Notes: generated by a model not told the origin, from the sequence alone. A stretch of DNA of 14,954 nucleotides from Octopus sinensis (GCF_006345805.1 NW_021825668.1:1-14954); one strand, 5' to 3'; counted from the first letter of the stretch, positions 1,541 through 14,406 are shown. A program made the numbers and translations.

Positions 1541-1630
1541 ATTGGTCCTTTCCTTTCCTTCACTGCTGCACCTCCTCTCTGCGACGGGCACTATAAAATC
1601 CACCACTCTGCGGCGTGGGCCTTTGTTCAT
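1541..1630 (+). promoter_or_regulatory. Candidate Pol II core promoter: reverse CCAAT (ATTGG 1541-1545) and TATA box (TATAAAA 1592-1598)
   Basis: Consensus TATA in a locally GC-richer, non-repetitive island. The predicted start is ~1620-1630, followed by an ATG-free segment ending at a strong splice donor. Confidence 0.6.
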
Positions 1631-1750
1631 CCTGAGAGCTTCTATAGACCAGGAAGTCCCGCGGTACAAAAGCAAGAAAGAACAACACCTCGAACTCATA
1701 AACGTGAACCAAATATACAAACCTATTAAGAACCTGTTTTATCAGTTGTG
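1622..1750 (+). other. Putative non-coding exon 1 (5' UTR) of the secreted Pro/Tyr/His-rich protein gene
   Basis: Downstream of the TATA box, contains no ATG and ends at GTG|GTAAGG (donor 1751). The link to the acceptor at 8665 is inferred and the start is approximate. Confidence 0.55.
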
Positions 1751-1771
1751 GTAAGGAATGATTACATTTTA

Positions 1772-1823
1772 TAAATATATATATATGTATATGTGTATAT
1801 ATGTATATATATGTATGTATATA

Positions 1824-1856
<33 letters not shown>

Positions 1857-1951
1857 ATATGTATGTATGTATGTATATATATGTATATATGTATGTATAT
1901 ATATATGCATGTATGTATATGTATGTATGTATATATATGTATGTATATATG

Positions 1952-1984
<33 letters not shown>

Positions 1985-2073
1985 ATATATATATACATAT
2001 ATATATATACATATATATACATATATATACATACATATATACACGAACACATATATATATAATATTCATATAT

Positions 2074-2106
<33 letters not shown>

Positions 2107-2145
2107 CCATACATATATATATATTTATATATTATATAATATATT
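1772..2145. repeat. Compound (TA)n/(TATG)n/(CA)n microsatellite
   Basis: Direct reading; source of the YI/MYVC ORFs. Confidence 0.95.
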
Positions 2146-2227
2146 CTTAGTTTTTTATATGCTAGACCACTGGTGTGAAATTGATGTTAATTAAATTAAT
2201 ATCTAATTTCTCACCCTCATTTAAATT

Positions 2228-2230
<3 letters not shown>

Positions 2231-2294
<64 letters not shown>

Positions 2295-2390
2295 TATAAT
2301 ATATATGTATATATATAAATATGTATTATGTATGTATATATCTATACATATAAATATGATTGAAGTATGTTTATATATGTATATATATAT
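2231..2390. repeat. (TA)n microsatellite, degenerate at the 3' side
   Basis: Direct reading. Confidence 0.95.
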
Positions 2391-2615
2391 TAGGGTGGTG
2401 CAAAAGTTTGGATACATAGGCAATTTGTTATATAACAATTTATGGTTTACAAGTGTTCTGCGCTTTCTGAAATTCTTGGCTTTTCTGCCATGGCTACCAA
2501 TCTGAATGACAGGAAAATGAAATTAGATATGATAATAATATGATCAAAATCATGCTAAAGATAAGAAATACGTTTTTGTAATTTCTCTATGGGTCCACAC
2601 TTTTGCACCACCCTG
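2391..2615. mobile_element. Tc1/mariner-type MITE (~225 bp)
   Basis: Left end agggtggtgcaaaagtttggatacatag matches the reverse complement of the right end ctatgggtccacacttttgcaccaccctg. TA follows at 2616-2617 and the element sits in a TA tract. Confidence 0.85.
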
Positions 2616-2616
2616 T

Positions 2617-2725
2617 ATGTGTGTGTGTGTCTGTATGTAGATATGTGGGTATGTACATATGTATGTATGTATGTTTTTATACTGGTACATATAATTACAT
2701 ATATATGCATACATATATATATATT

Positions 2726-2804
<79 letters not shown>

Positions 2805-2845
2805 TGTATATTATATATATAATATTTATATATTATATATATATG
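2617..2845. repeat. Compound TG/TATG/TA microsatellite
   Basis: Direct reading. Confidence 0.9.
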
Positions 2846-3045
2846 TGATCTCTTGAGCACACCAGCTCAAATATTTTTTCCTCTGTCTTCCCTTCTTGGG
2901 ATCTTTCCTTCTCCTTGTTTCCGACGAAGAGCTCCGCTCGAAACGTTTAAACCCTCCTTCCCTGAGCGTCAATAATACTTAATTGTTTCACGTCCTCGCG
3001 TTGCTGTGTTTTTTTTTCTCTTTTTTTTCTGTGTTTTCTTGTTTG
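2846..3045 (+). mobile_element. Penelope-like retroelement terminal-repeat fragment with hammerhead-like motif
   Basis: Pyrimidine-rich unit homologous to 3160-3355, carrying CCGACGA-A-GAGC-tcc-GCTC-GAAACGT. Minimal hammerheads are a known hallmark of Penelope-like element repeats. Confidence 0.6.
2917..2953 (+). ncRNA. Minimal hammerhead ribozyme-like motif (degenerate)
   Basis: GTTT / CCGACGA (core variant, U4->C) / A / stem II GAGC:GCTC / GAAA / CG / T T / T AAAC. Stem I GTTT:AAAC is offset by one extra T. Confidence 0.55.
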
Positions 3046-3054
3046 GATTACTTT

Positions 3055-3081
3055 ATATATATATATTATATATATATCTAC

Positions 3082-3158
<77 letters not shown>
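3055..3158. repeat. (TA)n microsatellite
   Basis: Direct reading. Confidence 0.95.
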
Positions 3159-3159
<1 letters not shown>

Positions 3160-3161
<2 letters not shown>

Positions 3162-3355
3162 CACGTGGGTATCATCAGCAATTTCCTTCCTCCGTCTTCC
3201 CTTCTTTGGACTTTTTCCATATTTCTGATGAAGAGCTCCGCTCGAAACATGAAATCCTCTTTCTTTTCTTTGCTTTCCTGAGCATCCAATAACACAGTAC
3301 TTGTACCACGTCCTCACACTGTTGTTTCTTCTTGCTTGTTCTTGTTTGGATTGAG
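3160..3355 (+). mobile_element. Second Penelope-like terminal-repeat fragment with hammerhead-like motif
   Basis: Aligns by eye with 2846-3045 (tcttcccttc..gga, gaagagctccgctcgaaac, cctgagc.tc.aataa, cacgtcctc.c..tg.tgt). Confidence 0.6.
3221..3255 (+). ncRNA. Minimal hammerhead ribozyme-like motif (probably inactive)
   Basis: ATTT / CTGATGA (perfect core, 3225-3231) / A / GAGC-tcc-GCTC / GAAA / C A T G / AAAT. The cleavage triplet is corrupted (ATG). Confidence 0.6.
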
Positions 3356-3576
3356 TATATATATATATATATATAAAATACACAATCTCAAGAATAATCA
3401 GCTGAAATTGCGATGATAATCTGGTGCTTGACTGAGGATAGAGGGCTTCGAATGACCCGTCCTTGTATTTTTTGTATCGTCTATTTGGATGTTTTGTTAT
3501 CCCTTTCTGTATCACCTAGTTGTCCAGATGTTTTGCATTCTTGTCTCATTTTGTATTTTATATATATATATATATA

Positions 3577-3971
3577 CTAGCAGTATCGCCCGGCGTTGCT
3601 TGGGTTTGTAAGGAAAATAACTATATAAGCATTTTTAGAGAGTTATAGCCAAAAAATAGCAAAAAAATGCATTAGAAATGGAAAAAAAAGATGGTAAATT
3701 TTTTTTTAAATCGTAGACTCATCGTAGACATTTTTAGAGAGTTACTTCCCTTATATAATAGCGAAAAAATGCATTAAAAGGGAAAAAAATTATGGTAAAT
3801 TTTTTAAAATTGTAGACTCATCGTAGATGCGCGCTAATACCCAGAAGCGCTCGATATGAATCATGACTATAAGATAGCCGGTTTTGGTTAAACTGCACCG
3901 CAAAATGTGGGAGTAGTTAGGAATCTAAATCGTAGGAGACACACACAAAACTTGACTTTTATATATAAAGA
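3577..3971 (-). mobile_element. Non-autonomous Helitron
   Basis: On the minus strand it begins TC (3971-3970) after an A and ends CTAG (3580-3577) before a T. A GC-rich imperfect hairpin (cccaagcaacgccggg) lies just before the 3' end, and there is no TSD. Confidence 0.7.
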
Positions 3972-4569
3972 TATGTAGAAAGTTGATTGTTATGACCAGT
4001 CAGAGAGTGACCACTCGATGCTCAGTAGCCAATGGTTTTGTTAATAAGTCCATGTCTCCCAGCCACAGTCCTGATTCAATGCATCTTGAAATTGGAGATA
4101 CTAAAACTGTTTGAAAGACCATTGGGTAGAACATACCTATGATTCAAAAGTTGCAGATTTGCCATATATTATGAGACGCTGATTCCAATGGAGAATTAGG
4201 CATAGGGTATTTGTGCGTCTATGGAATACTCAGCCAGTTAAAGTCAGAGTCAATGAGCAGATGGTTCGTTCAGTAAACAACTGGACATTCATTATTGAAA
4301 TTTACAGAGAACAATTTTTAGTGTATATGTATGTAGACAGATGTGTATACAAGCATAGATACAGTGTATGTTTGTATATGTACGGCCTTTTTATTATGAT
4401 TTAAGCTGGTCACATACACATACAAACTTATATATATATGAATCTATATGTAATATGTATATGTATGTATGTATAAATATATATATATTATATATCATAC
4501 CTAAAAAGGTCTTTTTTAACATACTGACTACTTGGTAAAATTATTAATTAATTAATTAATTAATTTTAC

Positions 4570-4640
4570 ACTATATATATATGTCTATGTATATTTGCAT
4601 GTACATTTTTTCATCAGATTTAGACACACACACACGCGCA

Positions 4641-4678
<38 letters not shown>

Positions 4679-4845
4679 CACATACACACATTTATAGCTA
4701 TGTCTATATATGCATGCATAAAAACATATATACATAGACACATAAATATATTGATATATATATATATATTTACACACGCATAAATATATGCATACACACA
4801 CACACACACACAACACACACACACACACATACACACACATTCATA
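4570..4845. repeat. Compound (TA)n/(CA)n microsatellite
   Basis: Direct reading. Confidence 0.9.
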
Positions 4846-4899
4846 TACCTATTAAATAATTTGCATCACAGAAGCAAAGGCATACAGTAACAGAAAAAT

Positions 4900-4963
4900 T
4901 TTTTTTATTCTCTTGTTCTTTTATATGTCTCAGCCTTGAGGGTTTGGCCATGCTGGGGCACTG
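4900..4963 (-). mobile_element. Short, diverged 3'-end fragment of family-B SINE
   Basis: tggccatgctggggcactgc and the preceding ttcttttatatgtctcag resemble the reverse complement of ggcggtgctccagcatggccg...ctgaaacaagtaaaagag at 6394-6445. Confidence 0.45.
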
Positions 4964-5044
4964 CAAAATAAAATTCTAAATTATATTTTTCTTTTATTTA
5001 TTTATTGTTTTCAATTCATCAATTCAGCCAGTCATATACTGTGA

Positions 5045-5061
5045 TGTATATATTATAGCAT

Positions 5062-5112
<51 letters not shown>

Positions 5113-5348
5113 TATATATTGTATGTATATATATATATATATGTGTATATATATATATATTAGTATATAATATATATATATATAATATATATAATATATA
5201 TAATATATTGCATATATATATCATATAATATATATATATATATATATAATATATATATCTATATATATAATATTATATATATACACATATATATATTACA
5301 TATATATACATATATATATATACATATATATATACCTATATATATATA
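5045..5348. repeat. (TA)n degenerate microsatellite
   Basis: Direct reading. Confidence 0.95.
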
Positions 5349-5597
5349 TTGGGTTGGGCATAATTTTGCAGCTTTTTTTCAACAAATTTTATTCAAGAAA
5401 AACAATCACATGTAAGAAATAAAAAATCTTTAAATGATTATTCCGGAGCATATTCACCATCTACTTCAATTATTGCTTCCCATTTGCTTGGCCAATGGTC
5501 AGACCATCATTTAAAGATGTTTTTGTTAAATATTGTTATTGTCTTTGTTGAATAAAATTTGTTGATAAAAAGCCGCAATAATTATGCACCAACCCGA
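5349..5597 (-). mobile_element. Internally deleted mariner element (MITE) retaining the transposase C-terminus
   Basis: ~50-bp TIRs (5349-5397 and 5548-5597) with TA on both sides. The minus strand reads ..WPSKWEAIIEVDGEYAPE* (stop 5438-5440), like the mariner C-terminal LPxRWxxxIxxxGxY motif. Confidence 0.85.
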
Positions 5598-5739
5598 TAT
5601 AAAATTTTTTTTTAAATACAAAGATCAAACAAAAAAAAACAACAACACCAGGAGATGGTATTGCCAAAGTATTAGCAGACGCTCAGGGAAGGAAAGAAAC
5701 TTTGCTTTATATTTCGAGCAAATGTATATATTCACATTT

Positions 5740-6468
5740 GGTGCAGGATTGGCTGTGTGGTTCCGGGTTCAGTCCCACTGCGTGGCATCTTGGGCAAGTG
5801 TCTTCTGCTATAGCCCCGGGCCGACCAATGCCTTGTGAGTGGATTTGGTAGATGGAAACTGAAAGAAGTCCATCGTATATATAGGCGCAGGAGTGGCTGT
5901 GTTAAGTAAGTAGCTTGCTTACCAACTACATGGTTCCGGGTTCAGTCCCACTGCGTGGCATCTTGGGCATTGTCTTCTGCTATAGCCCCGGGCCGACCAA
6001 TGCCTTGTGAGGATTTGGTAGATGGAAACTGAAAGAAGTCCATCGTATATATAGGCGTAGGAGTGGCTGTGTGGTAAGTAGCTTGCTTACCAACTACATG
6101 GTTCCGGGTTCAGTCCCACTGCGTGGCATCTTGGGCAAGTGTCTTCTGCTATAGCCCCGGGCCGACCAATGCCTTGTGAGTGGATTTGGTAGACGGAAAC
6201 TGAAAGAAGCCTGTCATATATATGTATATATATGTGTGTGTCTGTGTGTCTGTGTTTGTCCCCCTAGCATTTCTTGACAACCGATGCTGGTGTGTTTACA
6301 TCCCCGTCACTTAGCGGTTCGGCAAAAGCGACTGATAGAATAAGTACTGGGCTTACAAAGAATAAGTCCCGGGGTCGATTTGCTCGACTAAAAGGCGGTG
6401 CTCCAGCATGGCCGCAGTCAAATGACTGAAACAAGTAAAAGAGTAAGAGAGTAAAAGAGTAAAAAAGT
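5740..6468 (+). mobile_element. Family-B tRNA-derived SINE: two tandem 5' halves plus one full-length copy
   Basis: Units start at 5740 (deleted), 5884 and 6054 (170-bp period). Each has a GGCG(C/T)AGGAGTGGCTGTG-type head and B-box-like GGTTCAGTCCC. The last copy runs to a (GAGTAAAA)-type tail. Confidence 0.88.
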
Positions 6469-6726
6469 ATGCATGCATATGGATGTATGTAAAAATATGA
6501 AAATATATAGTTAAAAAATATTTATATATACATATATTATTATAAGTATATACACACACACACACATGCACACACAACACGCATGCACACACACACATAT
6601 ACACCCAGAATTTAGCATATATGATTTTAGTGCCATGCAATTTATTTTAGATATTTTTATGATGCCTTCATCTATTGTATAGCTGGTATGCATTTCATTC
6701 ATATAGTACACTTTACGTGTGTATAC

Positions 6727-6773
6727 ATATATTATTATTAATAATAATAGCATTATTATTATTATTATTATCA

Positions 6774-6807
<34 letters not shown>

Positions 6808-6823
6808 AATATTATTATTATTA

Positions 6824-6880
<57 letters not shown>
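6727..6880. repeat. (ATT)n microsatellite
   Basis: Direct reading; source of the poly-N ORF. Confidence 0.95.
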
Positions 6881-6881
<1 letters not shown>

Positions 6882-7044
6882 GTGGCACGTAAAAAGCACC
6901 CACTACACTCAACGTGGTTGGCGTTAGGAAGGGCATCCAGCCGTAGAAACACTGCCAAATCTGACTGGGCCTGATGAAGACTTCCGGCTTCACAGACCCC
7001 AGTTAAACCGTCCAACCCATGCTAGCATGGAAAACGGACGCTAA

Positions 7045-7078
<34 letters not shown>
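6882..7078 (+). mobile_element. 5'-truncated SINE 3' portion with (ATG)n tail
   Basis: ggcgttaggaagggcatccagccgtagaaac ... ccaacccatgctagcatggaaaacggacgctaa followed by (ATG)n. Recognised from memory as a common cephalopod SINE 3' end. Confidence 0.65.
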
Positions 7079-7080
<2 letters not shown>

Positions 7081-7358
7081 ACTATTATTACTATTATTAT
7101 TATCATTATTATTATTATTATTATTATCATTATTATTATTGCTATTATTACTATTATTATTATTATCATTATTACGATTATTATTATTATCATAATTATT
7201 ATTATTATTATTATTATTATTATTGCTATTATTACTATTATTATTATTATCATTATTACGATTATTATTATTATCATTATTATTATTGCTATTATTACTA
7301 TTATTATTATTATCATTATTACAATTATTATTATTATCATTATTATTATCATTATTAA

Positions 7359-7391
<33 letters not shown>

Positions 7392-7412
7392 CATTATTAT
7401 TATTATTAATAT
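7079..7412. repeat. Degenerate (ATT)n with higher-order repeat
   Basis: The variant block attgctattattactattattattattatcattattac(g/a)att occurs three times. Confidence 0.9.
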
Positions 7413-7460
7413 CTTATAGGATTCAGGTAACGCCTCCTGCAGGTACACAGAAACAAAAAT

Positions 7461-7658
7461 AAGAAGAGTGCCATTGTTATCACGTCAACGATATTTCTGC
7501 TTCTAGAGTGCCTTCCACGGGTTAAAAAAATAACCTTGCCAATCTACTTTATTGGGTACAACGTATGTTTCGACCAGTTCTGGGTCTCTTCAGGCACATC
7601 AATAAAAAGTCGCTAGATGCCAAAATATCGTTCACTTGATAACAATGGCACCCTTCTT
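7461..7658. mobile_element. Fold-back element: 46-bp inverted repeats around a hammerhead-containing spacer
   Basis: 7461-7506 versus the reverse complement of 7613-7658 gives 40/46 identical by manual alignment; the spacer is 106 bp. Confidence 0.75.
7548..7606 (-). ncRNA. Type I hammerhead ribozyme-like motif
   Basis: Minus strand reads TTTATTG atgtgc CTGAAGA GACC cagaact GGTC GAAA CA tacgt TG T A cc CAATAAA. The core, stems II and III and a GUA triplet are intact; proximal stem I is mismatched. Confidence 0.7.
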
Positions 7659-7709
7659 CTTTTATTATTATTAATAATAATAATAATAATGATAATAATA
7701 ATAATAATA

Positions 7710-8014
7710 CTGGAAACGTGGGTGGTTCTTTCAACATCCTTAAATAACCCTTATTCAGGGACCGTTAGAGCGGGATGGGCTACTCAACCTGAAGAAAATT
7801 CTAACTGGGCCCCACCTGCAAGGTTATGTGCTGTTTATCTTGATATGAGATCACCATATCGCGCACATATGGTTGTGATGCATGTGCCTGGTGTACCTTT
7901 ATCAGACGGGTAGTCATGATGGGTATATTGGGCTTCGTATATTTTACCCCAGTGTCACTTTGATGGCATGAACTGCTCTCTCACTCAATGATAATAATAA
8001 TAATAATAATAATA

Positions 8015-8055
<41 letters not shown>

Positions 8056-8060
8056 TATAA
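7710..8060 (+). mobile_element. 3' half of a non-LTR-type interspersed repeat (family C) with (AAT)n tail
   Basis: The first ~47 nt match the reverse complement of 12272-12318. The end (taccccag.gtcact..ctgctctctcactcaat) matches the reverse complement of ~11527-11563. An (AAT)n tail starts at ~7987. Confidence 0.75.
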
Positions 8061-8232
8061 ACAGCAACAATGATATTTTCATTTCGTGAGAATATCTCAT
8101 GACAAAGATGTTTTGTTTTTATTTTTAATCTTAATCACAAACTAGTTTCAAATTAATTGTGTGCAAGAAAGTCAATCAAAATTAATGCAGTAAATAATTA
8201 TGTACATAATTTGGAAGTAGCAGAATTACTTG

Positions 8233-8294
8233 TATACAAATTAATTGAACACCCTTCTTCTTTTATACAAATTAATTGAACACCCTTCTTCTTT
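8233..8294. repeat. Exact 31-bp tandem duplication
   Basis: tatacaaattaattgaacacccttcttcttt x2. Confidence 0.9.
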
Positions 8295-8541
8295 TATTAT
8301 TATTAATAATAATGATAATAATAATAATATATGTTACATTTTCTGGGGCCTTATATATCTGTTGAAATGTTTGTTTGATGGGTACTGTTTTTTATGTCCA
8401 CCCTGACAAGATTGATCCATAGCTGACCATTATTCATCCCATCGCAAGTATTTTGGATACATCCATCGAAACATATGTAGGAGATACGAAGATATAAATG
8501 TTTTAATAATATTTTGAACGTTTGTCTTCTTTTTCTATTTT

Positions 8542-8589
<48 letters not shown>

Positions 8590-8680
8590 ATATAGATATA
8601 TATATAATATATATAATATATACAGTATATACACACATACATACATGCTTAATCTTCATTTTCAGAATCCTACCAACAAA

Positions 8681-8726
8681 ATGTATACGTATCTTCTACT
8701 TTTGGCCCTAGTCACCATCTTTGGAG
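8681..8726 (+). CDS. Coding exon 2 (exon starts 8666): signal peptide MYTYLLLLALVTIFG
   Basis: Acceptor cttaatcttcattttcag| at 8665, A-rich context aacaaaATG, hydrophobic core, and donor GAG|GTAATG at 8727 (phase 1). Confidence 0.85.
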
Positions 8727-8756
8727 GTAATGTAGCCTTTCTTTTCCTTACATTTT

Positions 8757-9114
8757 GATTGTGTGTATGTGAGAGAATGTGTATGTGTGTGTGCACACGT
8801 GTGTATCTGTGTTTGTGTGTGTATGTGCATGTGAATGTGTGTATGTTTGTGTGTGTGTGCGTAAGTATGCATGTGAGAGTATACACATATGTGATTGTGT
8901 GTATTTGCATGTATATGTGTGTGTGTGTATGTATCTATGTGTGTGTATGCATGTAAGTGTATGTGTGTGTTTTATGTGTATATGTATGTGTATATATGTA
9001 TGTATGTATATGTATGAGTGTGTGTGTATGTATCTATGTGTGGGAATGCATGTAAGTGTGTGTGTATGTATGAGAGTGTGTGTATGTATCTATGTGTGTG
9101 TATGCATGTAAGTG

Positions 9115-9155
<41 letters not shown>
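8757..9155. repeat. Compound (TG)n microsatellite with higher-order unit gtatgtatctatgtgtg..atgcatgtaagtg x3
   Basis: Direct reading. Confidence 0.9.
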
Positions 9156-9156
<1 letters not shown>

Positions 9157-9470
9157 AAATGTTTTTATTTTTCATTCCCTTCGAAACTTTATCCCCAATA
9201 GTGGTTTGGAATTTAGCTGTTCTTTCTAGCGTGTAAGGAGTCCTATAATAGATGCCTCTTATGTGTTTAAATGTACACTGTATTTATATTAATGTGTGTA
9301 TGTATGCTTGTATGCTTGCACATGGAAGTAGTTCTCTGTGTGTGTATATGTGTTGTGTGTGTGTATGTGTGTGTGTGTACATTTTTGTTTTTATATATAA
9401 CTTTATGTTTTTGTTTATATTTACACATTTTTAATTCATATTTATTTAATGGTGTTATTATATTTTCCAG

Positions 9471-9497
9471 GACAAGCCGCAAGGGGAGAGGCTACAA
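9471..9497 (+). CDS. Coding microexon 3 (27 nt): (G)QAARGEAT(N)
   Basis: Acceptor tattttccag| at 9470 and donor CAA|GTAAGT at 9498. It is phase 1-1, in frame with both neighbours, and supplies small residues suited to a signal-peptidase site. Confidence 0.82.
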
Positions 9498-9544
9498 GTA
9501 AGTAAGACTACTTTTATGGGGAAAAGGGGTGGGTCTGTGTGTGT

Positions 9545-9664
9545 GTGTGAGTGATGGTTGTAAATGAGATTCACCATCATACAAGCAGTGTATTTCGTTT
9601 CCAACCTTCCATTAAAACATACCTTGTCATGGGAAAGAGCTACCTTACTTGGAAACAGATGGAG
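9545..9664. mobile_element. Internal fragment of an interspersed repeat (probable SINE body)
   Basis: Non-simple sequence (tcaccatcatacaagcagtg...ttacttggaaacag) resembling a cephalopod SINE body from memory; not verifiable here. Confidence 0.4.
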
Positions 9665-9733
9665 GTCTGGGAATCGAAACCACGATCCTATGACCGTGAG
9701 TCCGCTGCCCTAACCACTGGGCCATTGCGCCTC

Positions 9734-9734
<1 letters not shown>
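9665..9734 (-). mobile_element. tRNA-derived SINE head (family D), 5' fragment only
   Basis: Minus strand GGAGGCGCAATGGCCCAGTGGTTAGGGCAGCGG...GGTTTCGATTCCCAGAC is near-identical to the head at 13885-13952. Confidence 0.85.
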
Positions 9735-9766
<32 letters not shown>

Positions 9767-9767
9767 C

Positions 9768-9801
<34 letters not shown>

Positions 9802-9872
9802 ATATATATATATAATATATATAGATAGATAGACATGTATGTTTAGATATGTATGTTTAGATATGTATATAT

Positions 9873-9908
<36 letters not shown>

Positions 9909-9985
9909 GATAGATAGACATGTATGTTTAGATCTGTATGTTTAGATATGTATGTATATATATATATATATATTATATATAAATA
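9735..9985. repeat. (CA)n/(TA)n microsatellite with duplicated agatagatagacatgtatgtttagat block
   Basis: Direct reading; the block recurs at ~9822 and ~9908. Confidence 0.85.
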
Positions 9986-10367
9986 ATGATAAATATCAAA
10001 GTGAGTTATATACAGTAGCGGTAACACATCGTGACGCATATTTGCCATTTCAATATGGCTACCCCTAAGGGTGGATGCTACTGTAGTTTTTAGCCCCAGG
10101 AGGACACACTCCTCCAGCTGGCCATAGACACACTTTCTGTGCCCTATATATATATATATATATTATATATATATATATACACTCAGACACACACACACTG
10201 ACACATGCACAAACACATACACACACATAATGGCATATACACAGAGACATGCACACACACACACACACACACACACAACTAATTATAGAGTAGGTCAAAT
10301 TTGTTCATTGTTACCATTAATAATCGACCACTTCGTTTAAATATTTCCCCGTTCATCTATCTTGCAG

Positions 10368-10926
10368 ATAAAACCTCCAATGCCACCACGGATGACGGCC
10401 CTAGCAACCTCTTTAACCCTTACAACCCATCCCAACAATATCCGGGTGCCGGCTACTACCCGGGTGCCGGGCAACACCCGGGTGCTGGACCCTCTCCGGA
10501 TTCCAGTTTCCCTATCCTCAACAAAACCCACACACCCACCACACGACAACCACCACCCACTCTCACAATGCTCCCCATCATAGTGTCCAAGGTTCCTCCC
10601 AGCCTCAATTTCCGTTTCCTTTGCCCCCGCATAGCCACCACAGCTACCCAAATCACTTCGCCACCTACCAACCAGGCTCAAGTAACCAAGGTAACCATGG
10701 CTCCCAAGGGCACACTTCACCTTTCCCATTCCCTTTCCCTTTCCCCTTCCAAAAACAACAACAACAGCAGCCACATTTCCCACCCACCCACAACCAATAC
10801 CCTTATTACTCCCAATACCCCCACTACCCACACTATCCCCAATACTATTATCCCCATTATCCCTATTATCACCACTACCCATACTACCCCTACTATCATC
10901 ACTACCCTTATAACCAGCACTACTAA
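10368..10926 (+). CDS. Coding exon 4: secreted Pro/Tyr/His/Gln-rich low-complexity protein; 1-nt frame change near 10499-10501
   Basis: Acceptor ctatcttgcag| at 10367 in phase 1 gives KTSNATTDDG..(PGAG)x3..PSP. The frame from 10501 gives FQFPYPQQNPH..FPFPFPFPF..YPHYPHYPQYYY..HY* (TAA 10924-10926). Third-position variation supports each frame in its own segment. Confidence 0.75.
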
Positions 10927-11183
10927 ACAAACCCTCACCCTCAAAACCCCTTTTTTCCTCCCCCATCCCACCCCTCTACTGACCTCCTAGTAAACACCCC
11001 CTACGCTACCCAACACCACCTTCTCCCTTCTGTCTCTTTTTTTTTTTTTTAGCTCCTCTCCATTCTAGACCTCCGGGGGGGGGGCCTCGGCCCCTCGCCC
11101 CCTCCTAAGCAGATCCTTGCCACTTCTCCTGTGCCAGGATCACTCCTGCCTCCATCATGCCACTGCCTCTACCATCATGGCAG

Positions 11184-11184
<1 letters not shown>

Positions 11185-11223
<39 letters not shown>
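11185..11223 (+). repeat. (CAG)10(TAG)3 triplet repeat
   Basis: Direct count. Confidence 0.95.
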
Positions 11224-11484
11224 ACATTCGTACCGCTCCCTTTATTTTCTGACCTTCCTCCACCCCACCCCCTCCACCTACCACCCAAACCAATCTTTAT
11301 TACCTAAACCACCCGACCCCTGACCCCTGACCTCTGTGCCCTCTACCCTATTGACCTCTTCCTTAAACCAAACTTACCAAGTAGACCAATATGATGCAAT
11401 TCCACCATGTAGACTAACAGAACTATGAACCTTGTACTTAGTTCGTGTTACCATTACTTTCGTCCCATCTTACCAGTAAGTATT

Positions 11485-12930
11485 AGTATTGTTGTAATTG
11501 TTGTTGTTGTAATTGTTGTTGTTACTATTGACTAAGAGAGCAGAGTGACGGTGGGGTACAAATACACAAAGGTCTCTGAATAAAGGTTGTTTAACCCTTT
11601 TAGTGTTCGCATTATTCTGCTAAAATTCTTCATCCACATTGTTTTGAAATAATCCTGCATTAATCTTGTAGCTATGAGATTTTGATGAGGTAGCTGTTAA
11701 TTTTTAAAACGATATTGTAGGGTTGGTGTGAGAGACCAGATCTGGTCAGTTTGATCATAAAACAGGCAGAATATTTTTGGCCGGATATGGCCGGTTTCAA
11801 TGCTAAAGGGTTAAGGATGTTGAACGAACCCCTCATGTTACTAAAGGTGAATTATTCGAAACCCCAAAGAATCCCTCTCAACACACGGCTATGATGCTCC
11901 CCCACTACTTCTGCTCCTGATCAGAGGTGCACATATCGTCAACCACTAAGGGACATGGTAAACTGGTTACGGTCAAACAACTGACAAACAAATCTGTGGT
12001 ATTGAGCAGAATATTTGCTGTAGCCCATCTTTTATACCAAGACAAAACAATGTACATGATAACACTTCCAATCAGTTAAGATCAGTAGCCATGAGAGCCA
12101 CTGCCTGGTACTGCATCAGGGCATTAGCAAATCTGTGGTATCGAGCAAAATATTTGCTGTAGCCCATCTTTTATACCAAGACAAAACAATGTACATGATA
12201 ACACTTCCAATCAGTTAAGATCAGAAGCCATGAGAGCCACTGCCTGGTACTGCATCAAGGCATGAATCCGTGAATAAAGGTTGTTTAAGGATGTTGAACA
12301 AACCACCCATGTTTCCAAAGGTGAATTATCCAAATCCCCAAAGAATCCCTCTCAACACATGGCTATGATGCTCCCCCACTACTTCTGCTCATGATCAGAG
12401 ATGCACATATCATCAGCCACTAAGGGACATGCTCAATTGGTTATGGTCAAACAACTGGCAAGCAAATCTGTGGTATTGAGCAGAATATTTGCTGTAGCCC
12501 ATCTTTTATACCAAGACAAAACAATGTACATGATAACACTTCCAATCAGTTAAGATCAGAAGCCATGAGAGCCACTGCCTGGTACTGCATCAGGGCATGG
12601 ATCCATGAATAAAAGTTGTTTAAGGATGTTGAACAAACCACCCATGTTTCCAAAGGTGAATTATCCAAATCCCCAAAGAATCCCTCTCAACACATGGTTA
12701 TGATGCTCCCCCACTACTTCTGCTCATGATCAGAGATGCACATATCATCAGCCACTAAGGGACATGCTCAACTGGTTAAGGTCAAACAACTGGCAAGCAA
12801 ATCTGTGGTATTGAGCAGAATATTTGCTGTAGCCCATCTTTTATACCAAGACAAAACAATGTACATGATAACACTTCCAATCAGTTAAGATCAGAAGCCA
12901 TGAGAACCACTGCCTGGTACTGCATCAGGG
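11485..12930 (-). mobile_element. Family-C repeat on the minus strand with tandemly amplified 5' part (335-bp unit)
   Basis: Units start at ~11578 (interrupted by a MITE), 12126 (partial, ~140 bp), 12272 and 12607. The internally deleted 3' end and GTT/ATT tail lie at ~11485-11580. Confidence 0.8.
11595..11810. mobile_element. piggyBac-like MITE (216 bp)
   Basis: TTAA at 11591-11594 and 11811-11814, with termini CCCTTTTAG...CTAAAGGG. The empty site tgtttaaggatg is visible in sister units at ~12282 and ~12617. Confidence 0.9.
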
Positions 12931-13585: not shown

Positions 13586-13952
13586 TGTTTTGTTTGTTTG
13601 TTGAGCGAAGCAGTCTTCATCCCGTCTGTAGTGGGAGAAGTCCGAAACGTGGTCCTTTGCTATTCGTAAAATCTGCAGAAGAGAAAGCAGGTCAACCCCT
13701 GACACCGAGAGCATCGACGGATGGATGAATGCGCATCAAGGCTCAGCGGTTGCGTAGGAAGTCGGGGACAAGAAACAGGAAGAAAGAGTGAGAGAAAGAG
13801 TACAACAGGGGTCGCCACGACCCCCTGCCGGAGCCTCGTGGAGCTTTAGGTGTTTTCACTCAATAAACACACACAACGCCCGGTCTGGGAATCGAAACCG
13901 CAATCCTCCGACCGCGAGTCCGCTGCCCTAACCACTGGGCCATTGTGCCTCC
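13577..13952 (-). mobile_element. Full-length family-D tRNA-derived SINE
   Basis: Head with A box TGGCCCAGTGG and B box GGTTTCGATTCCC at 13952-13885, followed by the body and an (AAC)n-like tail at 13577-13602. Confidence 0.88.
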
Positions 13953-13954
13953 AC

Positions 13955-14406
13955 TGCTGTTTCTGTTTCAGTTGCTGTTGAGCGAACGGTCTTCGTCCCA
14001 GAGTGGGAGAAGTCTGAAACATGGTCCTTTGCTATTCGTAAGACCCGCAGAAGAGACAGCAGGTCAACACCCCGACACCGAGGGGCATCGACGGATGGAT
14101 GAATCCGCATCCAGGCTCAACGGTTGCGTTTGTTGAGCGAAGCTGTCTTCGTCCCAGAGCTTGCAAGTAGTGGGAGAAGCCCGAAACCTGGTCCTTTGCT
14201 ATTCGTAAGACCCGCAGAAGAGACAGCAGGTCAACCGCCCCCCCCCCCCCCCCCCCCCCCCCCCCCGACACCGAGATGGATGAATGCGCGTCCAGGCTCA
14301 GCGGTTGCGTAGGAAGTCGGGGTGTTGTTGTTGCTGTCGTTGTTGTTGTTGTCGTTGTTGTTGTTGTTTGTTGTTGTTGTCGTCGTTGTTATTGTTGTTG
14401 TTGTTA
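13955..14406 (-). mobile_element. Two further 5'-truncated family-D copies in tandem
   Basis: 13973-14128 and 14130-14322 repeat gttgagcgaa..gtgggagaag..ggtcctttgctattcgtaa..ggatgaat..ggttgcgt. The second has an expanded C-run (~14238-14265), and a (GTT)n tract follows. Confidence 0.85.

Follow-up and report, generated by a model that had tools for sequence, protein, structure and literature searches.

The window analysed here, a stretch of 14,954 bp, is the entire unplaced contig VCDQ01011083.1 of the Octopus sinensis assembly GCA_006345805.1, which we take to be a long-read build. It carries a genuine four-exon spliced gene, the product of which begins with a predicted signal peptide and the last exon of which is open in two overlapping frames, one annotated and rich in Thr, Pro and Ile, the other rich in Pro, Tyr, His and Gln. 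An earlier note on this DNA, made from the sequence alone, had described the gene as unannotated-looking and had restored the second of these frames. The gene is in fact on record: RefSeq lists the same coding exons as XP_029654002.1, and a protein search with the full restored product returned this entry as its single match (XP_029654002.1 / A0A6P7TXJ9, "mucin-3B-like [Octopus sinensis]", 231 amino acids [aa]). The range of its coding sequence (CDS) on record is 8681-10990, and the sole contig encoding it is the window itself.

The features of the gene are listed below, with positions counted from the first base of the window.

1593..1599, plus strand: TATAAAA box, a putative core promoter, read directly, about 25-30 nucleotides (nt) upstream of the start of exon 1
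1622..1750, plus strand: exon 1, predicted non-coding 5' untranslated region (UTR), start approximate; donor TG/GTAAGG at 1750/1751
1751..8665, plus strand: intron 1, 6.9 kb, full of microsatellites and tandem units resembling short interspersed elements (SINEs)
8666..8726, plus strand: exon 2, 15 nt of 5' UTR, the ATG and the predicted signal peptide MYTYLLLLALVTIFG(G); matches the RefSeq N-terminus
9471..9497, plus strand: exon 3, 27 nt, phase 1-1, encoding (G)QAARGEAT(N); present in the RefSeq protein
10368..10497, plus strand: first part of exon 4, in the signal-peptide frame, (N)KTSNATTDDGPSNLFNPYNPSQQYPGAGYYPGAGQHPGAGPS(P)
10490..10512, plus strand: frame discontinuity, where the contig is one base short (or two too long) for the selected reading and the top-scoring frame changes
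10498..10926, plus strand: second part of exon 4, in the -1 frame (frame 1), GFQFPYPQQNPHTHH...FPFPFPFPFQKQQQQQ...YPHYPHYPQYYYPHYPYYHHYPYYPYYHHYPYNQHY; stop codon TAA at 10924-10926
10499..10990, plus strand: RefSeq continuation of the CDS (frame 2), the Thr/Pro/Ile-rich "mucin-like" reading, judged an out-of-frame by-product
10927..11584, plus strand: putative 3' UTR, extending to a putative poly(A) signal, AATAAA (11579-11584), read directly

The start codon lies at 8681 in the context AACAAAATGT, with an A at -3. Exon 2 is flanked by the acceptor ttttcag and the donor GTAATG, and exon 3 by ttttccag and GTAAGT; exon 4 starts at 10368 behind the acceptor cttgcag, has no donor and carries the rest of the coding sequence. 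The coding part of exon 2 comprises 46 bases and so ends in phase 1, which exon 3 preserves, making both coding introns phase 1; the Asn codon of an NKT glycosylation sequon is split across the 9497/10368 junction. The exons, GT/AG splice sites and 1-1 intron phases proposed in the earlier note are all present at these coordinates, and the coding junctions match XP_029654002.1. The literal spliced translation, with exon 4 read as deposited, is identical to that protein in every residue; since the NCBI model and the earlier note arrive at the same coding exons, the exon structure is independently supported. The RefSeq record gives the CDS range only, and exon 1 was derived from the sequence. 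Its assignment as 5' UTR is plausible given the TATAAAA box, the donor and the leader of 144 nt (exon 1 plus the first 15 nt of exon 2), which lacks any ATG (P ~0.03 from the ATG frequency of the window).

The reading frame of exon 4

Beyond the two coding junctions, the signal-peptide frame continues as a Thr/Pro/Ile-rich reading to 10990, including the stretch TPTIITTLITSTTK, and this is the annotated frame; the Pro/Tyr/His/Gln reading, from 10498 to 10926, lies in the -1 frame. Exon 4 is rich in C and A (C 43%, A 28%, G only 7%), which makes stops scarce and leaves more than one frame open, among these a 209-aa antisense open reading frame (ORF). Because openness alone is uninformative, we tested which open frame accounts for the other. 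Codons 10498-10923 were shuffled, both in their order and among synonymous codons, with each frame in turn assumed to be real. With frame 1 assumed real, the annotated frame was stop-free in 0.86 of the codon-order shuffles and 1.0 of the synonymous shuffles; with the annotated frame assumed real, frame 1 was stop-free in only 3e-4 of the former (mean 6.3 stops) and 5e-5 of the latter (mean 6.9 stops), an asymmetry of three to four orders of magnitude. These P values are optimistic, a point to be held against the choice of frame 1, as the shuffles treat codons as independent and the sequence is internally repetitive.

Codon usage within frame 1 points the same way. The frame contains no stop in 142 codons, and it has 23 codons of the form TA plus pyrimidine (Tyr) and none of the form TA plus purine (stop), as against 23 of CA plus pyrimidine and 19 of CA plus purine (Fisher p = 4e-5). 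The stop that ends it falls at the end of a Tyr/Pro/His repeat block; upstream of about 10490 the same frame has three stops. Within the (FP)5 block (ttc cca ttc cct ttc cct ttc ccc ttc), and likewise within the Gln run (caa...cag cag) and the Thr run (acg aca acc acc acc), variation occurs only at frame-1 third positions. A 27-nt repeat present in two copies shows three synonymous and three non-synonymous codon differences in frame 1 and none and four, respectively, in the annotated frame, where the variation between copies falls at second codon positions and produces Thr/Ile, His/Leu and Pro/Ser changes. Ahead of the break, the differences among the three PGAG units are confined to third positions in the frame of the signal peptide (ggc/ggg/gga, gcc/gct).

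Amino-acid composition locates the switch. A composition model trained on 10600-10923 and scored in sliding windows for each frame changes its preference between the windows starting at 10478 and 10490; it favours the signal-peptide frame up to about 10480 and puts the switch at about 10484-10498. The annotated protein changes abruptly in composition at 10498: before this point Ile, Met and Cys are absent and Lys occurs once, and beyond it there are many of these residues. Over the latter part it carries Ile, Leu, Met, Cys, Arg, Lys and Asp, of which the rest of the product has few or none.

It would nevertheless be possible to read the RefSeq model as correct throughout, encoding a secreted, O-glycosylated, mucin-like protein of 231 aa rich in Thr, Pro, Ile and Ser, with the Pro/Tyr/His frame open by an accident of C/A composition. 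Such a reading is the literal, uninterrupted translation and was taken up by the NCBI pipeline, and its richness in Thr, Pro and Ser is mucin-like; one measure, codon entropy minus amino-acid entropy, gives no separation of the two frames (1.23 bits each) and thus shows equal synonymous redundancy in both. The shuffle asymmetry, the second-position differences between repeat copies and the compositional break at 10498 all run against it, as does the lack of a SEA, EGF, VWD or other domain, and we regard it as very improbable.

Our analysis therefore gives good support to the Pro/Tyr/His/Gln frame downstream of about 10498 as the frame kept open by selection; the frame restoration of the earlier note is favoured alike by the stop asymmetry, the avoidance of TA plus purine and the composition model. 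The "mucin" C-terminus is most likely an out-of-frame by-product, and the RefSeq protein and its name are most likely artefactual in large part, the last 163 of 231 residues of XP_029654002.1 (~70%) lying in the presumed wrong frame. The antisense ORF over exon 4 (209 aa, ATG-initiated, 10337-10966, minus strand) was dismissed as a gene; in 11% of the synonymous shuffles preserving the frame-1 protein it is still open, as expected of a by-product of composition.

Origin of the frame break

The interval 10490-10512, across which the two frames must be joined, holds a series of short homopolymer runs (ccc, cc, gg, tt, cc, ttt, ccc), and the candidate residue at the junction is G, D or DS. Small unplaced contigs are the commonest place for residual one-base indels in long-read assemblies. 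A residual one-base assembly indel is the most likely cause of the break. The contig is both small and unplaced, and in the assembly, which comprises 13,516 scaffolds, only 86% of the bases lie in scaffolds of chromosome scale and 5.2% of BUSCOs are duplicated (PMC10700109).

The shift may instead be real in the animal, as a recent null or neomorphic allele or as the species-specific pseudogenisation of a former Pro/Tyr/His gene; lying in the last exon, it would escape nonsense-mediated decay and yield a hybrid protein of 231 aa. The literal sequence does carry the shift, indel alleles are frequent in low-complexity repeat genes, and the share of duplicated BUSCOs allows that the contig is an alternative haplotype. 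If the contig were a broken haplotype, however, a second, intact copy of the protein would be expected, and none is annotated in the databases; the zero stops across the 142 codons of frame 1 and the known concentration of one-base indels in contigs of this kind also argue for an assembly error. A real frameshift is thus an unlikely explanation, but the chief competitor to an error in the contig.

Splicing could in principle bridge the frames as well. A short cryptic intron in exon 4, with its donor at 10446, 10464, 10482 or 10506 and its acceptor at 10591 (86-146 nt), would leave the genome correct and the mRNA lacking FQFPYPQQNPHTHHTTTTTHSHNAPHHSVQ; these GT..AG pairs have a length of 2 modulo 3 and give a stop-free product. 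The donors GTGCCG, GTGCTG and GTTTCC are poor beside the strong sites of the three real introns, and the acceptor (...gtgtccAAG/G) has no pyrimidine tract. Moreover, the segment to be removed has the His/Pro/Gln/Thr character of frame 1 and shows synonymous variation in its Thr run (ACG ACA ACC ACC ACC), and RefSeq does not model such an intron; we give this explanation hardly any weight. Two further candidates were discarded: AG acceptors in 10300-10560 lead only to the annotated or the third frame, so that no alternative acceptor restores frame 1, and 10490-10512 contains no X XXY YYZ slippery heptamer of the kind used in programmed -1 ribosomal frameshifting.

On balance, the account we hold to be probable, though far from certain, is that of a TATA-driven four-exon gene for a maintained secreted protein of about 210 aa (about 190 aa when mature), with an indel in the contig at 10490-10512 that puts the last 163 RefSeq residues out of frame; pH-switched self-association is proposed for the product.

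Several considerations weigh against this account. At 10520-10550, in a His/Thr block, the composition model scores the third frame (THPPHDNHHPLSQ) slightly above frame 1 (HTHHTTTTTHSHN), and the reading of this block is therefore less secure than the rest; further compensating indels within it are possible, if unsupported. The ORF tests show that the frame was under selection until recently, not that the missing base is an assembly error. By our own estimate about 5% of single-base changes would introduce a stop into frame 1, so the intact 142-codon frame limits the age of a shift only to a few per cent of neutral divergence, and a real frameshift younger than that would look alike. Finally, exact look-ups of the antisense 209-aa ORF and of a 101-aa frame-1 ORF found no independent contig on record.

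Repeats around the gene

The introns are very rich in microsatellites of the types (TA)n, (TATG)n, (CA)n, (ATT)n and (TG)n, and these are the source of most of the "ORFs" in a mechanical ORF list of the window.

1770-2390, 2699-3158, 5047-5349, 6730-7412, 8544-9154 and 9757-10277: microsatellite stretches

A tRNA-like element occurs on the minus strand in two 73-nt copies that are 92% alike (9664-9736 and 13882-13954), the reverse complement reading GTGGAGGCGCAATGGCCCAGTGGTTAGGGCAGCGGACTCACGG...GGTTTCGATTCCCAGACC. Both copies are probable SINE heads of tRNA origin; the first lies in intron 3, the second beyond the gene on its downstream side. ARAGORN called no tRNA in the window, and a search of the window against Rfam gave 0 RNA families. 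Tandem arrays at 5733-6243 (intron 1) and 457-764 are built of 168-nt and 155-nt units, with 90-96% identity between units, and contain SINE-like sequence of the GGTTCCGGGTTCAGTCCCACTGCGTGGCA type. Just past the putative poly(A) signal, 11811-12930 holds about 2.4-3 copies of a 335-nt unit (93-98% identity). The region 13630-14240 holds three copies, 88-93% alike, of a 72-nt segment (AGTGGGAGAAGTC.GAAAC.TGGTCCTTTGCTATTCGTAAGA...), one of which adjoins a 29-base C homopolymer at 14238-14266.

The restored product and its possible role

With the frame restored, the product has 210 aa, of which about 192 form the mature part. Its N-terminus has a hydrophobic core, LLLLALVTIF (Kyte-Doolittle peak 3.2 over LLLLALVTI), followed by GGQAARG, with possible cleavage after G-Q-A and an n-region free of basic residues; as judged from hydropathy, this is consistent with a cleavable signal peptide and agrees with the one proposed in the earlier note. 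Behind it the modules would run, in order, as a short acidic stretch open to N-glycosylation, three PGAG units flanked by Y, Q and H, a His/Thr-rich block, the (FP)5 block, a short poly-Gln run and a C-terminal Tyr/Pro/His block of 50 residues. The repeats are PGAG (three times), (FP)5 and units of the YPHYP/HHYPYYPYY type, and the only sequons are N25-K-T and N29-A-T.

The mature protein consists of Pro (18.8%), Tyr (14.1%), His (12.5%), Gln (11.5%), Ser (7.8%), Gly (7.3%), Thr (6.8%), Asn (6.2%), Phe (6.2%) and Ala (4.2%), with no Cys, Ile, Met or Trp. Past residue 34, after a DD pair, D, E and R no longer occur and Lys occurs once, along with 24 His and 27 Tyr residues; Tyr, Phe and His together make up 33% of residues. 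There are no dibasic processing sites and, His aside, almost no cationic residues. The length of about 210 aa, the two sequons and the absence of C, D, E, I, M, R and W after the DD pair are as the earlier note had described them.

The earlier note had recognised no family, and neither did the searches: Pfam gave 0 families at E <= 1 for XP_029654002.1 and for the restored product, and the PDB gave 0 matches. A word-index search with the full restored product found only the annotated XP_029654002.1 and no relative, a second with the 142-aa frame-1 part had no match at E <= 10, and an exhaustive phmmer search, in which the frame-1 part was run against 1.84 billion representatives, had none at E <= 1e-3. 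A word-index search with the N-terminal 68 aa (E <= 10) came back empty and missed even the identical XP_029654002.1, and is not counted. The lack of any relative in either frame tells against a maintained protein, but low-complexity bias correction makes these homology negatives weak evidence that the product is a true orphan. A single-sequence AlphaFold2 model of the frame-1 part (pLDDT 55, pTM 0.13, no secondary structure) fits a disordered chain, such a model being weak evidence. Literature searches with the accession, with the RefSeq name and species and with the product's motif strings found no paper, and those on octopus sucker, beak, radula and egg proteomes found nothing specific to the product. 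The product thus appears to be an orphan low-complexity secreted protein of a familiar general kind.

In composition it resembles the coacervating His-rich beak proteins (HBPs) of squid, which are also rich in Tyr. DgHBP-1/2/3 of Dosidicus gigas contain 20-35% Gly, 16-19% Ala and 10-16% His and are built on GHGXY and GAGFA pentapeptides (PMC9999432). His is the only charged residue of their repeats (PMC9999432 section 3.4.3); His-Tyr hydrogen bonding and Tyr stacking drive pH-dependent coacervation, and His-catechol adducts cure the material (PMC9999432 section 3.4.3; PMC11931252). Like the HBPs, the octopus product is a predicted secreted cephalopod protein of low complexity, with a non-repetitive N-terminal part followed by a repetitive C-terminal part; its His content (12.5%) falls within their range, Tyr and Phe could act as hydrophobic stickers, His is by composition virtually the sole ionisable side chain of the repeats, and the Y-PGAG-YY-PGAG-QH-PGAG module recalls GXGXA/GAGFA-type units. 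In contrast to the HBPs, it is poor in Gly (7.3%) and Ala (4.2%) and rich in Pro (18.8%) and Gln (11.5%), which places it outside their composition, and it contains no GHGXY or GAGFA unit. No beak protein appeared among the search results, no direct comparison with a beak-protein sequence having been made. The product plausibly works like a His-rich beak protein but is not a member of that group.

Suckerins, the proteins of the sucker ring teeth of squid and cuttlefish, are Gly-rich P[M1]P[M2] block copolymers of Ala/Val/Thr/His beta-sheet modules and GGY/GGLY modules (PMC11931252), and octopuses are without ring teeth (PMC9999432). The product, a predicted secreted protein as suckerins are secreted ones, shares with them a modular, Tyr/His-rich design in which Pro delimits the modules, but it has no P[M1]P[M2] repeats and no beta-sheet or GGY/GGLY modules; lacking M1 and M2, it is not a suckerin. 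With mucin-3B only the out-of-frame reading has anything in common, namely its high content of Thr, Pro and Ser; SEA, EGF and transmembrane modules are all missing, Pfam gave no match, and the length is 231 aa as against thousands of residues. The product is not a mucin, since mucin domains are lacking and the Pro/Thr/Ser reading is not in the selected frame.

The P/Q-rich secretory calcium-binding phosphoproteins (SCPPs) of vertebrates, such as amelogenin and statherin, match what is predicted for the octopus product in being secreted, disordered and of small size, with much Pro, Gln, His and Tyr. Their genes have a layout like the one predicted here: exon 1 is untranslated, exon 2 carries the signal peptide, and the last exon encodes the bulk of the protein. 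Vertebrate SCPP genes have phase-0 introns and SXE phosphorylation motifs, whereas the octopus gene has phase-1 introns and lacks an SXE motif. Searches of Pfam and the PDB and the exhaustive phmmer search gave no sequence similarity, and to our knowledge the P/Q-rich SCPP family is restricted to vertebrates, so that the resemblance is convergent at most.

A mechanism can be proposed from these features. Past residue 34 the fixed charges would be the chain ends and the single Lys, and about 13% His would make the chain a pH-switchable polycation, with Tyr, Phe and His "stickers" spaced by Pro, Gln, Ser, Gly, Asn and Thr "spacers". The protein would be disordered and soluble with its His protonated in an acidic secretory compartment, would self-associate or coacervate at seawater pH, and might later be fixed in the extracellular matrix by Tyr/DOPA-His (DOPA, 3,4-dihydroxyphenylalanine) or di-Tyr cross-links or by metal-His bonds. 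Since no titratable residue other than His is abundant, and since Tyr, Phe and His account for a third of the chain, the product has the sticker-and-spacer make-up of proteins that phase-separate on His deprotonation. We favour, by analogy, a secreted, self-associating, cross-linkable matrix component; that this mechanism is read from composition only counts against it. The same holds for the biomaterial role suggested in the earlier note (beak, radula, sucker cuticle, egg capsule or glue), which composition may indicate.

The frame-1 protein could also be real and yet a soluble secreted factor, either a histatin- or statherin-like precursor of salivary or mucosal type (antimicrobial, metal-binding or surface-coating) or a component of egg jelly or chorion. 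The predicted signal peptide and small size would suit such a factor, a Pro/Gln/Tyr/His composition is also typical of vertebrate salivary and enamel proteins, and Pfam shows no chitin-binding or cross-linking domain. The absence of dibasic processing sites and near-absence of cationic residues besides His point the other way, and both the 33% share of Tyr, Phe and His and the repetition in blocks are features more often met in material proteins that self-assemble (PMC9999432); neither point is decisive, and a soluble factor seems to us a minority possibility. More doubtful still is a bolder form of the matrix proposal, in which the frame-1 product would be the first to be recognised of a class of secreted proteins, specific to octopods, rich in Pro, Tyr and His and poor in Gly, that phase-separate by pH. 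They would impregnate and harden an extracellular structure of chitin or protein, for instance the beak, radula, sucker lining or egg chorion, and would be a functional counterpart of the squid beak proteins that evolved independently and that a mis-framed annotation has so far hidden from proteomic and homology searches.

Lineage-specific, low-complexity secreted proteins are common in cephalopod genomes, and the finding is therefore unsurprising in kind. Its immediate bearing is on the record: XP_029654002.1 / A0A6P7TXJ9 is probably mis-translated over 70% of its length and its name is misleading. If it is indeed mis-framed, proteomic searches against the reference would miss the real product; an O. 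vulgaris genome annotation was itself built on the O. sinensis annotation (PMC10700109). If expressed in a hard or adhesive tissue, the product would bring a Pro-rich, Gly-poor design to the few catalogued cephalopod proteins whose coacervation is driven by His and Tyr, which are actively mined for pH-responsive peptide materials (PMC11931252, PMC9999432).

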